The notes beneath the pieces are model-generated. The model had not been told where the DNA came from, did no database searches, and saw nothing but the letters and a program-made list of their open reading frames with translations. Shown in pieces: positions 11,940-20,004 of a DNA stretch of 64,000 nt. Origin of the DNA: Iphione sp. A-MEVVRFRX5. Lineage: Eukaryota. A program made the translations under genes and the position numbers. Location: assembly GCA_976226885.1 (NCBI GenBank), contig OZ320322.1:65038001-65102000 (forward strand), in the 5' to 3' direction. Position 1 is the stretch's first letter, and every line of letters begins with the position of its first letter.

Positions 11940-12180
11940 AGGACAGGTGAAGGTCAGAAAGTGGGAGAGGTGAAGGTTAGAAAGCAGCAGAAGAGAAGGT
12001 TAGAAAAGTGGAGAGGTGAAGGTTAAAAATCAGGAGAAGTGAAGGTTAGGAAGCAGGAGAAGTGAAGGTTAGAAAGTGTGAGAGGTGAAGGTTAAGAAGG
12101 GGGAGTAGTGAAGGTTAGAAAGCAGAATTGAAGGTTGGAAAGCAGTAGAGGTGAAGGTTAGAATGTGAGAGAGGTGAAGG
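11940..12180. repeat. gaggtgaaggttagaaag minisatellite, left part (DIRS target)
   Basis: The same unit resumes at 16996-17160, right of the DIRS element. Confidence 0.9.
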
Positions 12181-12466
12181 TTAGTACCAGTGTTCGTCGC
12201 TTCGGGGCGACGAAGGGAGATGTGCTCGACGCCACCTGGTGGAAGACAGTGAAAACCTCGTTGTTAGCCAGGTGGAAGTACGGCACATCATTGGAATTTT
12301 TTATCCTCGGACATCGATACGCTAAGGACTATTTTCCTCCGGATTTTTTCTTCATCGTTATTTTATAGAGGTTACTGCCCTCTTTCGTGCCGCTTTTGTT
12401 TCGGCTGGTTTGAGGAGCTGTTCATTACAGCCCATTCTTGTCGCCACCAACTGACCGCTGGCCAAC

Positions 12467-13678
12467 ATGGCGACTGACCAAGAGGGTCGACGTGATTTGT
12501 CGGCAGAGTCTGACTCTGAGGGTTCTATCATGGACCGTGGAGGACCCAGTTCAGACACAACTCGCCAGAACAATCAGGGCGAGTCTTTGGCACAAGTCCT
12601 TGATGCTATTCATTCCTTGGGGGAACAGATGATAACGTCGATCCAACAAAGCGGCCACCGGTCCAGGGACCACTCCCATTGCCGCGATAGATCCAGGGGC
12701 CGCTCCCGCTCCGGTGAGCGGGACAGACGTTCCCGTGACGCTGATGCTCGTTCGACGACAGGCAGTTACTTGTCGGATAGAACCTCCACCTTCTCAGAAG
12801 ATGGACTGTTGGCAACATTACCGGAAGACCCCAACATGCCGGCTCTGTCGGAAGTGGGAGAATCGGAGGGCGGTGCCTACTTTGACGAGATGACACGTGG
12901 CATCGACCAGGATAAGTCGGTTTCACATGCTACACACTCTAGGGTGGCAAAATTCGTGGGAGGTCGAGTGGCCAAACCAATGGAAACGGACACGATCAAA
13001 GAACTGCGAGACAAATATGCGCGGCCAACCAACATTTCCCAACTGAAGGTGCCCAAGCTGGATGCCACACTCTGGCTTCATATGTCACCAACGGGACGGA
13101 ACAGAGACAAAGCGCTACAGAAACACATGCATAGCGCTAATGCTGTAATCTGCGCGATAACCCGACTGGCGGAGATCTTGATAGCTAATGAGCAAAACAA
13201 TCCATGGGTCCGCGACGCCCAGAAGCTGCTAACGGACATCGTCAATTTGGAAGTGGGATCTCGAATGGATGTACTGAAGCTACGCAGGCACGAGGTGCGA
13301 CTCAGTCTGCCGGACACATACAAAAGGCTGGCCGAAGACGCTTCACCCACGGCAGAGTTTCTGTTTGGAGACAACTTCCGTCAGCGATGCAAGGAAATGG
13401 AGGAAGATGAGAAGTTCGCCAAAAAATTTGACAAAGGCAAGACAGGAGGCAAACAGAAGCCAAAGAATGGCAACACTTCCAACAGGACTGAGCCCTACAA
13501 CAAGCAGCGTCAAACCAACCAGACCGGCAACTCCAACAGGGGCCGCTATAATAAGTCGCGCGGGGATTATCGCCAGTCCACCACTTACAAGAGCCTGCTG
13601 GAATCGTCAGACCAGGCACATCAGGGAAACGGCAAAGGGCTGGGGTTTGGCCAGAAACCCCAGCCGAAATCCCAGTAG
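12467..13678 (+). CDS. DIRS gag-like ORF1 (403 aa)
   Basis: First long ORF inside the ITRs, with the P..LFG-type motif (AEFLFGDNF) and a basic C-terminus usual for DIRS gag. Confidence 0.85.
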   Translation: MATDQEGRRDLSAESDSEGSIMDRGGPSSDTTRQNNQGESLAQVLDAIHSLGEQMITSIQQSGHRSRDHSHCRDRSRGRSRSGERDRRSRDADARSTTGSYLSDRTSTFSEDGLLATLPEDPNMPALSEVGESEGGAYFDEMTRGIDQDKSVSHATHSRVAKFVGGRVAKPMETDTIKELRDKYARPTNISQLKVPKLDATLWLHMSPTGRNRDKALQKHMHSANAVICAITRLAEILIANEQNNPWVRDAQKLLTDIVNLEVGSRMDVLKLRRHEVRLSLPDTYKRLAEDASPTAEFLFGDNFRQRCKEMEEDEKFAKKFDKGKTGGKQKPKNGNTSNRTEPYNKQRQTNQTGNSNRGRYNKSRGDYRQSTTYKSLLESSDQAHQGNGKGLGFGQKPQPKSQ

Positions 13679-13680
13679 AG

Positions 13681-15573
13681 GTGAGTACACCACAGTTGGC
13701 ACGTAAAACTACCATTGCTGATTTCCTTGACCACTGGGAAGATATTACTTCCAACCCAGAGGTTTTGGACATGGTACGAGGGGTGCGGTTGCAGTTCGCT
13801 CAGAACCCTACGTGCCCAGGGGCCCTCAGACCTTATGGACTGACGCTTGAGCAGGCCATGGCCGCCACGAACATGGTGTCAGACATGCTCCGCGCAGGTG
13901 TAATTTCACAAGTCCCCTTGAGTCAGGCAAAATTTGTATCAAACATTTTCTTGCGACCAAAACCAAACGGCACCTACTGCCTCATTGTGGACCTCTCGGC
14001 CCTTAACGAATTCTTAATCAAAGAACATTTTAAGATGGAGACCTTCCAGTCGGCCTTGCTTGCAGTGGGACCCAGTTCTTTCCTTACGTCCTTAGATTTA
14101 AAAGACGCATACCATTCTGTAAGTATTCGACCACAGGACAGAAAGTTTCTGGTTTTCCAGTGGGACCAAGCCTGGTATCAGTTCGATGTGCTCCCCTTTG
14201 GGCTTAGTTCGGCCCCTCGTGTTTTCACAAAGTTAATGAAGCCAGTGCTGACGAGTTTCAGGGAACGCGGCATTAATGTAATAGCTTACCTAGACGACCT
14301 GTTGCTAATAGCAAATACACCAGAACAAGCACGCCAAAACACACAGTGGGTTGCGCAACACCTAGAGAGTCTAGGATTCGTGGTGAATGAACAAAAATCT
14401 CATAGGATACCCACACAGAACATCGTGTTCTTGGGATATCATATCTGTACGGCCCCCCGAACAGTGGCACCAACACCAGACAAAGTAAACCAGGTGGTAC
14501 AATCCCTCCAATCACTCCTGTCAAACAACACATGCTCTGTTCGACGCGCAGCCTCCCTCATTGGGTCGCTCAATGACCTTACTAAGGCAAGTCTGTATGG
14601 CCCGGCACACATGAAACACTTAGAGCTTAGGAAAATCAAATGCTTAAGGAGAGCGGGCAGAAAAGCCTTCGAAGGGACTTTCACTCTCACGCATAGATGC
14701 AGGGGAGACCTGCAATGGTGGTCCTCCACACTACCACAAACTATTCGCAGTTTTGTCCCAACTTCTCCGACAACTACCTTAATGACAGATGCCTCCCTCT
14801 TGGGCTGGGGAGCCTGCTTTGAGGGCAGCAGCACGGGGGGACTGTGGTCGATAGCGGAAGCGGACCTCCACATCAACGTACTTGAACTCCTAGCTGTACT
14901 TTTCGGCCTTCGCACTTTCTGTGACCAACTAACGGGAACACATCTACTAATCATGTCAGACAACACCACTACGGTGGCATACATCAACAATATGGGGGGC
15001 ACTCGAGCGGGGAAGTGCAACCTAGTCGCCTTAGACATTTGGAAATTTGCGGAGGATAGACACCTTTTCCTTCAGGCCACACACATCCCGGGGGACCGTA
15101 ACGTCCTAGCTGATGCAGAGTCTAGGGAATTTAACTTGGAGATTGAGTGGGAGCTAAACCACCACATCTTTCACAGGATTACATGTCAGTGGGGTACCCC
15201 GGAGGTGGACTTGTTTGCCTCTAGAGTAAACCACAAGGTACCACGTTACATCAGTTGGAGGCCAGACCCACAAGCAATTTTTGTCGATGCGTTGGCGTTA
15301 TCATGGGGTCAATTTGATATAGCATATGCTTTTCCTCCTTTCAGCTTGGTCGGAAAGGTGATCCGCAAGGTGCAACAAGATCGGGCAAACATCTTCCTGG
15401 TAGCTCCAGCGTGGACAGGACAGTGGTGGTTCCCCCTGCTGACCCAACTCTCCGCCAGACCTCTCCTCAAGTTCCGGGGACAACCGGACAATCTAACGGG
15501 GCCCCTAGCAACATCTCAACCACACATCGCAAATATGGGTCTAATTGCAGCGCACTTATGCTTCAGGCAGTAG
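13681..15573 (+). CDS. DIRS pol: reverse transcriptase, RNase H and Dam-like methyltransferase domain
   Basis: RT motifs LDLKDAY, LPFGLSSAP, YLDD; RNase H TDASLLGWG, HINVLELLAV, SDNTT, LADAESR; MT-like VDLFAS...YAFPPF. Frame is open from 13552, overlapping gag. Confidence 0.97.
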   Translation: MSTPQLARKTTIADFLDHWEDITSNPEVLDMVRGVRLQFAQNPTCPGALRPYGLTLEQAMAATNMVSDMLRAGVISQVPLSQAKFVSNIFLRPKPNGTYCLIVDLSALNEFLIKEHFKMETFQSALLAVGPSSFLTSLDLKDAYHSVSIRPQDRKFLVFQWDQAWYQFDVLPFGLSSAPRVFTKLMKPVLTSFRERGINVIAYLDDLLLIANTPEQARQNTQWVAQHLESLGFVVNEQKSHRIPTQNIVFLGYHICTAPRTVAPTPDKVNQVVQSLQSLLSNNTCSVRRAASLIGSLNDLTKASLYGPAHMKHLELRKIKCLRRAGRKAFEGTFTLTHRCRGDLQWWSSTLPQTIRSFVPTSPTTTLMTDASLLGWGACFEGSSTGGLWSIAEADLHINVLELLAVLFGLRTFCDQLTGTHLLIMSDNTTTVAYINNMGGTRAGKCNLVALDIWKFAEDRHLFLQATHIPGDRNVLADAESREFNLEIEWELNHHIFHRITCQWGTPEVDLFASRVNHKVPRYISWRPDPQAIFVDALALSWGQFDIAYAFPPFSLVGKVIRKVQQDRANIFLVAPAWTGQWWFPLLTQLSARPLLKFRGQPDNLTGPLATSQPHIANMGLIAAHLCFRQ

Positions 15574-16499
15574 CGGAACTGTGCCCACATCCAGCCTTAA
15601 CCAAACACATCATCAGGTCATGGCGCCCGAAGACCAGGCGCCTGTACAAATCATACCTTGACAGGTGGCGTACATTTTGTGTGGAACAGGGCTTCCACCC
15701 GCGCAAGGCTACGACGGTGCAGGGCCTACTTTTCCTGAATAAACTTTTCCTACAAGGGGTGAGATACAACACCATCAACACAGCCCGATCTGCGTTATCG
15801 ACCATTTTGCCTAGAGACGATGGGGTCCCATTTGGCAAACGCTACGTCACAACCAGGATGCTTCGAGGCATCTTCAACGTCCGGCCACCAAGAGCCAGAT
15901 ACACCCAAACATGGGACGTCGACTTAGTGCTTGAGTTCCTAAGAGAATGGACACCGAATGCATGCTTATCTTTGAAGCAGATCACCTTGAAAACGAACAT
16001 GCTGCTGCTGTTAACATCGTGCGGCCGTACGCAGACAATCTACAAAATCCTTCGACACAACATCAAGTTTTCTACGGATGGGTCTTTGATGATCCTTTAT
16101 GCATCCGTACTGAAACACTCCACACCGGGAAGAGGTTCCAGCCAGGTGCACCTCTTGCCATGCAACGCAGGCAAGTCATTGTGCGTAGTCCGCTGTGTCC
16201 ACGAATACTTGAAGCGGACATCGGAAATAGCAGACGAGAGGGGACCCCTCTTTGTAGGAACCATCCCCCCACACCGACCAGTAGGGCAGTCGACCATAGC
16301 TCGCTGGGCCAAAGATGTCATGCATCAAGCGGGTGTGGATACCACCGTCTTCACTGCGCATAGCACTTGCGGAGCATCCACATCAAAGATGTTTGCACAA
16401 GGGATGCCCATCAGAGAGATCCTCAAAAAGGGCATGTGGCGCTCTGACTCCAGCTTTTTGCGTCACTATAAGAAAGACATTATGCCTGTTCAACGCTAA
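15558..16499 (+). CDS. DIRS tyrosine recombinase (H-x-x-R motif reads HSTC)
   Basis: SAM-like N-domain (WRPKTRRLYKSYL..W), LTSCGR, HST[C]GAS, GMW....F.RHY. ATG at 15558; the track ORF starts 15411. Confidence 0.95.
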   Translation: MLQAVAELCPHPALTKHIIRSWRPKTRRLYKSYLDRWRTFCVEQGFHPRKATTVQGLLFLNKLFLQGVRYNTINTARSALSTILPRDDGVPFGKRYVTTRMLRGIFNVRPPRARYTQTWDVDLVLEFLREWTPNACLSLKQITLKTNMLLLLTSCGRTQTIYKILRHNIKFSTDGSLMILYASVLKHSTPGRGSSQVHLLPCNAGKSLCVVRCVHEYLKRTSEIADERGPLFVGTIPPHRPVGQSTIARWAKDVMHQAGVDTTVFTAHSTCGASTSKMFAQGMPIREILKKGMWRSDSSFLRHYKKDIMPVQR

Positions 16500-16639
16500 C
16501 ACCTGTCCATGGGACGGTGCACAACTGTACATACGTTCTTCTGACAGTTTGTTCCTCGTATTACCCGTTACGACGTTTGAACTTTCTTCTTACGCAGTTG
16601 ACATTCACCTGAACGCAGACTCTGCTCTGGGACTTTCAA

Positions 16640-16765
16640 CATCTCCCTTCGTCGCCCCGTAGCGATGAACACCGGTACTAATCAACACGTTTGACTAGAC
16701 TTACCTAGTAAGTTGCTGGTAAACGAAGGTTAGTACCGGTGAAGGAGCGAAGGGTGGACGAAGGG
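16640..16765. other. DIRS internal complementary region (ICR)
   Basis: 5' part is complementary to the left ITR start (3 mismatches); 3' part is the exact reverse complement of 16908-16991. Confidence 0.95.
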
Positions 16766-16995
16766 CCCACCCTTCCCACCCAACAAGATTGACTCCAGCG
16801 CATCATACCCTTCGCTCCTTCCTACATTGTCATTCGACCCATCGCAGGTCTTCTGCTACATCGGGTCTTTCAAGACTGTCTTCCACCAGGTGGCGTCGAG
16901 CACATCTCCCTTCGTCCACCCTTCGCTCCTTCACCGGTACTAACCTTCGTTTACCAGCAACTTACTAGGTAAGTCTAGTCAAACGTGTTGATTAG

Positions 16996-18687: not shown

Positions 18688-20004
18688 ATGGGGTGGCCCT
18701 GCCGTCCCGGTCAGCAGCGCTGTGTCGGCATCATTCTAGCCCTCTGTCTCCTTGGTAACGTGCTCCTGGTGCTCCGTTACCTGACGTCGCGCAGCCACGC
18801 GGCGGCCGACGTCCTCACCGACGACAATGGCGTCCCGCTCTTCCTGCACGAGCCGTTCGACGACGACCGGCACCGGAACAACCTGGAGCATGCGCACCAC
18901 GTGCGACTCCGGCTTCAGCACGGCCGCAACGACGGCCCCGGCCGCCATCACCTCGTCAAGAAGCGGCACTTCCCGGACACCAACCGGTCCATGCTGCACG
19001 TGCTCAGTGAGCATGCGCGGCGGCAGGTCCTCCACGTAGACCGGGAAGAGGTGGCGCCACCTAGTCTCCTCCGAGCAGGGACGCCCAGCAACTATGGCGG
19101 CCAAGGTCACGCGCCGGTCACGAATCAAGGATACGTGGACGGCTTACAACTTCCCTGGACGGGAGAACAGGGAGGTCTAGATTTCACGAAGATCAAGGCG
19201 CTGGCCATGCCATCCTCCTGTAGGGGGCAGCAGCAGCAGCAGCAGCTGGTAGTGGTGGTGTGCTCTGCTGCCGCTAGGTTTGAGTTGCGGGCGGCCATTA
19301 GAGAGACGTGGGGGAGGGCGGGCGTCAGCCTCGTCTTCGTGGTGGGCCGGGCGGCGGACGCGGGCTCGCCGCTCCTGTCTAGACAGGTGGAGACGGAGGT
19401 GGCGGAACAGGGGGACGTCCTTCTGCTGGACATGGAGGAGAGGTACACGCTGCTCACCTACAAGACGCTGGCGGCCTTCAGCTGGGTCCTCCACCACTGC
19501 AGCCACGGCGCCACGCACCTCCTCAAGGCGGACGACGACGTCTTCATCAACGTCCCCAACCTCCGCCACGAGCTGCGCCTCATGGAAGACAGCCTGCCGG
19601 GCAGATTCATGCTGGGTCACGTGATAGACGGCGCTAAGCCAATCACCGCCCGCCAGGACAAGTGGTACCTGGGGGCGGGTCAGTTCCGGGGTGGCACCTA
19701 TCCCACCTATCTGTCGGGCTCTGCGTATGTCTTTCCAACCTCACTGCTCAAGCCTCTTCTCCACGAAGCTCAACAAACGCAGCCATTTTGGATTGAGGAT
19801 GTCTTCATCTCGGGGGTGTTGGCCCAGCGACTCAAAGCGGTTCTCATCCACAATTCCAAGTTTGAGTACCAGAAGAGCAAGTTTGGACCGTGTCACTTCC
19901 GGTCTATCATCTCTGCCCACCAGGTGTCGCCTGCCGACCTCCGCAGAGTGTGGGCACAGATGGGCAACCAGCGACTAAACTGTGGCCCGCGAGTATTCAC
20001 TTGA
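18688..20004 (+). CDS. Beta-1,3-galactosyltransferase-like type II membrane glycosyltransferase (GT31 family), 438 aa
   Basis: N-terminal TM (VGIILALCLLGNVLLVL), R.AIRETWG, VFVVG, LTYKT, KADDDVFINV (DxD), YPTYLSGSAY, IEDVFISG. Acceptor 10 nt upstream of the ATG. Confidence 0.95.
   Translation: MGWPCRPGQQRCVGIILALCLLGNVLLVLRYLTSRSHAAADVLTDDNGVPLFLHEPFDDDRHRNNLEHAHHVRLRLQHGRNDGPGRHHLVKKRHFPDTNRSMLHVLSEHARRQVLHVDREEVAPPSLLRAGTPSNYGGQGHAPVTNQGYVDGLQLPWTGEQGGLDFTKIKALAMPSSCRGQQQQQQLVVVVCSAAARFELRAAIRETWGRAGVSLVFVVGRAADAGSPLLSRQVETEVAEQGDVLLLDMEERYTLLTYKTLAAFSWVLHHCSHGATHLLKADDDVFINVPNLRHELRLMEDSLPGRFMLGHVIDGAKPITARQDKWYLGAGQFRGGTYPTYLSGSAYVFPTSLLKPLLHEAQQTQPFWIEDVFISGVLAQRLKAVLIHNSKFEYQKSKFGPCHFRSIISAHQVSPADLRRVWAQMGNQRLNCGPRVFT

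Follow-up and report, generated by a model that had tools for sequence, protein, structure and literature searches.

How does a DIRS retrotransposon translate its polymerase when the pol frame has no start codon of its own? The question is raised by an element in a 64,000-nt stretch of contig OZ320322.1 from Iphione sp. A-MEVVRFRX5 (the window; positions are counted from its first nucleotide, and all features lie on the + strand). DIRS elements make up a whole retrotransposon order whose gene expression is almost unstudied, and reviews of the order mention only overlapping ORFs (PMC3266345, PMC9210276, PMC6681497). A sequence-only reading of the window proposed that the element makes a Gag-Pol fusion by programmed −1 ribosomal frameshifting (−1 PRF), a mechanism that its author did not know to have been shown for DIRS elements. 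This remark agrees with our search of the full-text literature and the reviews, which found no mention of frameshifting, slippery sites or native splicing in DIRS elements; the older papers of Goodwin and Poulter were outside the scope of that search, and an earlier passing suggestion is possible. Frameshifting by −1 is a classic retroelement device, and the sequence features described below very probably document it newly for DIRS elements. A canonical and strongly conserved cassette for gag-pol expression aligns the order with retroviruses and many LTR elements, and it gives annotators a rule for joining DIRS ORF1 and ORF2.

Organization of the DIRS1-like element

The window contains a complete DIRS1-like tyrosine-recombinase retrotransposon at 12174-16995. 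Its left inverted terminal repeat (ITR; 12174-12250) starts with sequence complementary to an internal complementary region (ICR), and conservation among the sister copies of the same genome begins at about position 12175. The right ITR (16875-16995) combines complementarity with a conservation peak, and the ICR (16639-16765), itself such a peak, pairs with both termini. The DIRS identity proposed earlier is borne out by these repeats, by a pol ORF with matches to RVT_1, RNase H-like and Dam in Pfam, and by a tyrosine-recombinase (YR) ORF; for protease and DDE integrase, no enzyme ORF beyond pol and YR was found in 12174-16995. The ICR and ITR arms of the window copy are 100% complementary over 88 nt despite the lack of a near-identical second copy in the genome. 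The noncoding block at 12180-12320, which comprises the left ITR and the 5' leader, has a mean pairwise identity of about 0.7 among sister copies, well above that of the adjoining gag N-terminus.

ORF1 (12467-13678, frame 2) encodes 403 aa and is called gag by its position. Most sister copies keep it intact, with an unchanged stop position. A word-based protein search returned no gag relatives at E <= 1e-5, and comparison with Pfam and PDB sequences gave no credible match, neither to LAP2alpha nor to PNMA. The pol ORF (13555-15573), which encodes reverse transcriptase, RNase H and a Dam-like methyltransferase, is in the −1 frame relative to gag and overlaps it by 124 nt. The sequence-only reading had placed pol in this frame with no ATG before the conserved region, and both statements held for the window copy: the first ATG of the frame falls within the conserved pol N-terminal region. 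It had rightly described the frame as open across the overlap but had set its start at 13552; since 13552-13554 is a stop codon, the frame is open from 13555. Absence of an ATG between the upstream stop and the conserved domain was a feature of 19 of 20 lineages from the element's own genome.

The YR ORF was placed at 15345-16499, in a frame that is open from 15318 (a start at 15411 was also given) and has its first ATG at 15558. Its sole Pfam match was a weak one to the SAM-like N-domain, and it can be aligned with the PF00589-containing recombinase ORFs of distant loci. The HxxR...Y tail of tyrosine recombinases is seen in sister copies. In the window copy the motif reads AHSTCGA (about 16330-16350), with Cys in place of the HxxR arginine; one sister copy also has Cys there, and 18 of the 20 sister copies having the motif have Arg. 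The window copy is probably defective for integration, judging from this substitution, although all its ORFs are open.

In the genome, no near-identical second copy of the element was found; about 40 places match it at 67-73% and two short fragments at 79-88%, and nearly all of the genome matches stop just past the gag/pol cassette described below. The DIRS group of this genome consists of many lineages about 30% divergent from each other, several of them with all ORFs intact. An intronless ORF at 18688-20004, 1.7 kb downstream of the element, has a strong match to Galactosyl_T (PF01762) and is presumably a host gene.

A slippery heptamer and hairpin in the gag/pol overlap

Within the overlap, the gag codons CAG GGA AAC place the heptamer G GGA AAC (13624-13630) in X XXY YYZ phase. 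It is followed by a spacer of 7 nt (13631-13637) and a candidate stimulatory hairpin (13638-13665) with an 11-bp stem (13638-13648 paired with 13655-13665) and a 6-nt loop (13649-13654). The gag stop codon TAG (13676-13678) lies 52 nt past the first base of the heptamer. The in-phase heptamer, the spacer and the stem had been located correctly to the base by the sequence-only reading. The hairpin alone has 11 perfect pairs and a predicted folding energy of −20.9 kcal/mol, and its 77-nt context reaches −30.6 kcal/mol (z = −2.9 vs shuffles). By a rough count, the chance of an in-phase heptamer in a 124-nt overlap is about 0.06, onto which the chance of a perfect 11-bp stem at a distance of 5-9 nt, about 1e-5, has to be multiplied. 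A search of the genome for the exact cassette pattern gave 122 occurrences, vs 0 for the reversed control, and the genome matches listed all have the 7-nt spacer.

We oriented and aligned 30 sister lineages of this genome, which are about 70% identical overall; in pol protein most of them share 55-66% identity with the window copy, and 2 of the 28 compared are near 40%. These copies share ancestry, so that binomial and rank statistics overstate their independence. The heptamer is GGGAAAC in 29 copies and GGGAAAT in the remaining one, in gag phase in all 30, and a gag stop (TAG, TAA or TGA) is found at the same distance in 29/30. In many sister lineages gag, at about 370 codons, and the −1 frame are both fully open. 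The 5' arm of the hairpin is invariant, the core 10 stem pairs are formed in 30/30 copies, and the loop varies freely. All 22 variant cells of the stem alignment are wobble-compatible changes in the 3' arm, from G-C to G-U or from U-A to U-G. A 12th pair, joining G13637 with a C at the position of 13666, is formed in 22/30 copies and shortens their spacer to 6 nt, while the window copy has G-G there. The sequence-only reading had suggested looking in relatives for heptamer phase and for covariation in the stem: phase and pairing proved to be conserved, and double-sided compensatory changes were absent among the 30 copies. The 5' arm never varies, so a shuffle control carries no information here; support for the stem rests on invariance together with one-sided conservative changes.

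The cassette also stands out from its surroundings. Of all 42-nt segments in the 3 kb compared, the one that begins precisely at 13624 is the most conserved; its mean pairwise identity is 0.87 vs 0.5-0.7 elsewhere, a level equalled only by the ICR and the ITRs. Conservation at synonymous sites is in excess across the cassette: gag third-codon positions inside it have a mean identity of 0.74 and are invariant in 40% of cases, compared with 0.38 and 1.2% for gag outside it, and the invariant share is 57% in the stem arms and 0% in the loop. The locus thus combines an in-phase heptamer, a predicted stable structure 6-7 nt behind it that pairs in 30/30 copies, and a downstream −1 ORF that is open across the overlap and has no start of its own. 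Phase, spacing, structure and such an ORF are the sequence-level hallmarks of −1 PRF, and their joint presence supports the earlier proposal.

Distant DIRS loci, known signals and competing explanations

We then considered DIRS elements from outside this genome. The pol protein has more than 1500 relatives, the best of which is 47% identical. A metagenome scan with a single pol protein as query found no relative, and an alignment-based scan yielded 80 DIRS loci from metagenomes, to which protein look-ups added 4. The distant set comprised 43 distinct loci, related by shared ancestry, in which gag spans 250 codons or more and pol is 35-47% identical. In these 43 loci pol is in the −1 frame relative to gag, with overlaps of 37-307 nt, and a canonical heptamer in gag phase lies within the overlap in 39 of them. 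The heptamers differ by lineage (TTTTTTA, AAAAAAC, TTTAAAC, GGGTTTT, GGGAAAC and TTTTTTG), and the counts in the three phases were 48/16/4. Folding of the 70 nt downstream of the distant heptamers is stronger than that of gag controls (mean z of −1.36 vs −0.24; Wilcoxon p = 0.001). Given the shared ancestry, p-values computed on these loci are upper bounds on significance. As a negative control, the pol/YR overlaps of the distant elements showed no phase preference (18/22/8), and most of them were without any heptamer. Some other distant DIRS lineages, represented by 8 loci, have gag and pol in a single continuous frame, with a 1091-aa product in one example, and would need no frameshift.

When the cassette was compared with all of Rfam, the sole match was RF01093, the human Ma3 (PNMA3) frameshift signal, with a score of 18.2 bits for the window copy and 22.6-26.7 bits for 7 sister copies, all below the gathering threshold of 35. 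In 8/8 copies tested, the alignment takes in the full model, beginning with the first base of the heptamer and finishing at the gag stop. The two signals share the heptamer GGGAAAC, a similar spacer length, an 11-bp stem whose arms are almost identical in the two (GGGCU.GGG with CCC.AGCCC) and, about 10 nt past this stem, a UAG. They differ in loop and 3' tail, and the DIRS cassette shows no sign of the Ma3 pseudoknot partner; in addition, Ma3 belongs to a domesticated gag gene of Ty3/gypsy type, whereas the cassette sits in an active-looking DIRS family. The Ma3 signal has reportedly been proven experimentally, by Wills and colleagues in 2006. The likeness to it is strong, short of membership in RF01093, and it may reflect either homology or convergence.

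GGGAAAC sites with H-type pseudoknots are known from the gag-pro junction of SRV-1/MPMV and from PEG10. The DIRS cassette resembles these in having G GGA AAC at the overlap of gag with the next ORF, a structure 6-8 nt downstream and a Gag fusion as the predicted outcome. In contrast to them, it supports a simple hairpin only, and we rejected a pseudoknot because the loop is variable and no conserved downstream partner is present. Simple-hairpin −1 PRF sites are found in HIV-1 gag-pol and human astrovirus 1a/1b. There, as in the DIRS cassette, a GC-rich stem-loop of about 11 bp takes the place of a pseudoknot as the stimulator, but the heptamers are UUUUUUA and AAAAAAC, which are the two commonest in the distant DIRS loci. 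The DIRS cassette is a compact candidate signal of the hairpin type, closely like that of Ma3.

Other explanations of the conserved block were weighed against these data. The idea that a heptamer and a hairpin met by chance in a decaying element might draw on the window copy, which is unique at high identity and has Cys at the catalytic Arg position of its recombinase; it is for practical purposes refuted by the 122 exact genomic copies against none for the control and by retention of the cassette in many lineages with intact ORFs. It is also very unlikely that the need to encode two proteins in the gag/pol overlap accounts for the conservation by itself, with no function at the RNA level. Both frames are indeed open here, and gag third positions are first positions of the pol frame, but the pol-frame peptide is not conserved in the overlap and the variable columns alter its residues. 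Moreover, the loop is just as dual-coding and yet varies, whereas 30/30 copies agree at the four-fold degenerate sites of the stem arms, and in the remaining overlap (13555-13620) conservation does not exceed that of gag generally.

What speaks for a splicing or RNA-processing role lies next to the cassette: a strong, conserved donor-like GTRAGT sits 15 nt past the stem, and high conservation continues through it. On such a reading, which we regard as improbable, the block would mainly serve RNA processing, with the hairpin presenting or masking a donor at 13681, and Pol would be made otherwise, for example by non-AUG initiation at GTG 13681 or by ribosomes that reinitiate once past the gag stop. 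This leaves unexplained why the heptamer is invariant in the exact phase of gag at 6-7 nt from the stem, and why other canonical heptamers, always in phase, take its place in distant lineages. The two features can be separated in the distant loci, where 7-181 nt lie between the heptamer and the gag stop and the donor comes 5-41 nt after it. As for reinitiation, it is inefficient in eukaryotes when the preceding ORF is 400 codons long. Dual coding or the donor-like site could still add to the conservation of the cassette.

We consider it highly likely, from the features described above, that 13624-13665 is a working programmed −1 frameshift cassette that makes Gag-Pol. Phase, spacing, fold and conservation are observed, and from them we infer slippage, its efficiency and the fusion protein. 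A ribosome translating gag would pause at the hairpin that begins 7 nt downstream of the heptamer, with GGA in the P site and AAC in the A site. In a minority of ribosomes, both tRNAs would re-pair one base back, on GGG and AAA, by tandem slippage. Slipped ribosomes would read the −1 frame beyond the gag stop into the reverse transcriptase, RNase H and methyltransferase regions and so produce a Gag-Pol fusion, whereas the majority would terminate at the gag stop and release Gag alone.

A candidate intron downstream of the cassette

The donor-like site next to the cassette raises the further question of how the YR ORF is translated, as no conserved ATG marks the 5' end of this ORF, which in many lineages contains no ATG at all. 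At 13678-13686 the window copy reads GAG/GTGAGT, a 5' splice-donor-like sequence that would be cut after GAG, so that the last exon base would be 13680, at which a codon of the −1 frame is complete. A 3' splice-acceptor-like pyrimidine tract with CAG lies at 15328-15344, within the pol codons for AFPPFS, and 15345, in phase 0 of the YR frame, would be the first base of exon 2. Joining 13680 to 15345 would remove a 1.66-kb intron with the reverse transcriptase, RNase H and most of the methyltransferase domain, and would put the YR ORF in the same −1 frame, so that the same slip would yield Gag-YR. On balance we lean, with little more than even confidence, towards a single frameshift site that serves two mRNAs, with the unspliced form giving Gag-Pol and the spliced form Gag-YR.

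Both ends of the candidate intron are conserved. Directly after the gag stop, a donor-like GTRAGT is present in 29/30 sister copies. A donor that scores 8 bits or more with a hand-entered matrix lies between −6 and +60 nt relative to the gag stop in 32 of the 43 distant loci, compared with 0.9% of control windows; a donor count that needs no matrix was made as well. These distant donors are in phase 0 of the −1 frame in 31/32 cases. On the acceptor side, the tract CCTTTCAG is invariant at synonymous sites in 16/16 copies, and branch-point-like motifs occur 20-30 nt upstream of the acceptor at 15344/15345. The Ser of FPPFS is encoded by AGY in 22/24 distant loci, against a background of 25%. 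In 9 distant loci the acceptor AG is the very point at which the YR frame opens, and in others the opening lies no more than 25 nt away. Between the acceptor and the pol stop, a single stop interrupts the YR frame across 16 copies, leaving it open in 15/16, vs 56 stops in the third frame.

Several other routes to the recombinase were examined. A second −1 PRF, from pol to YR, was rejected: in-phase heptamers are not enriched in the pol/YR overlap, and in 9 loci a TAG of the YR frame sits at the acceptor. An acceptor at 15566 would be in frame in the window copy, but its AG is not conserved in sister copies, and 15344/15345 was preferred. The YAG 8 nt before the recombinase ATG gives no in-frame product as an acceptor and is absent in two copies. 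Pattern searches of the genome found no intron-less copies, their matches being a mutated donor, a small deletion and unrelated DNA, and a look-up of Logan contigs with a related gag returned only unspliced forms. Searches for RNA runs, made with the element and with the neighbouring host gene as queries, listed none.

Spliced subgenomic gag RNAs are made by Ty1/copia elements, namely Drosophila copia and Arabidopsis EVD (PMC5580714). The candidate DIRS intron is similar to theirs in that it would remove pol, which in Ty1/copia elements leaves a shorter mRNA that favours Gag. It differs in that the predicted spliced DIRS RNA would also carry a recombinase ORF reachable only via the frameshift. 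Should the intron prove real, one DIRS transcript would give three products through recoding together with alternative splicing, and this would settle how a recombinase ORF that lacks a conserved start codon is translated across DIRS1-like elements. This splice-linked dual use is the part likely to surprise specialists. As regards the junction of the two downstream ORFs, the pol stop overlaps an ATG of the YR frame (TTATGA) in most sister copies, and in the window copy the corresponding positions are ATG 15558 and pol stop 15571.
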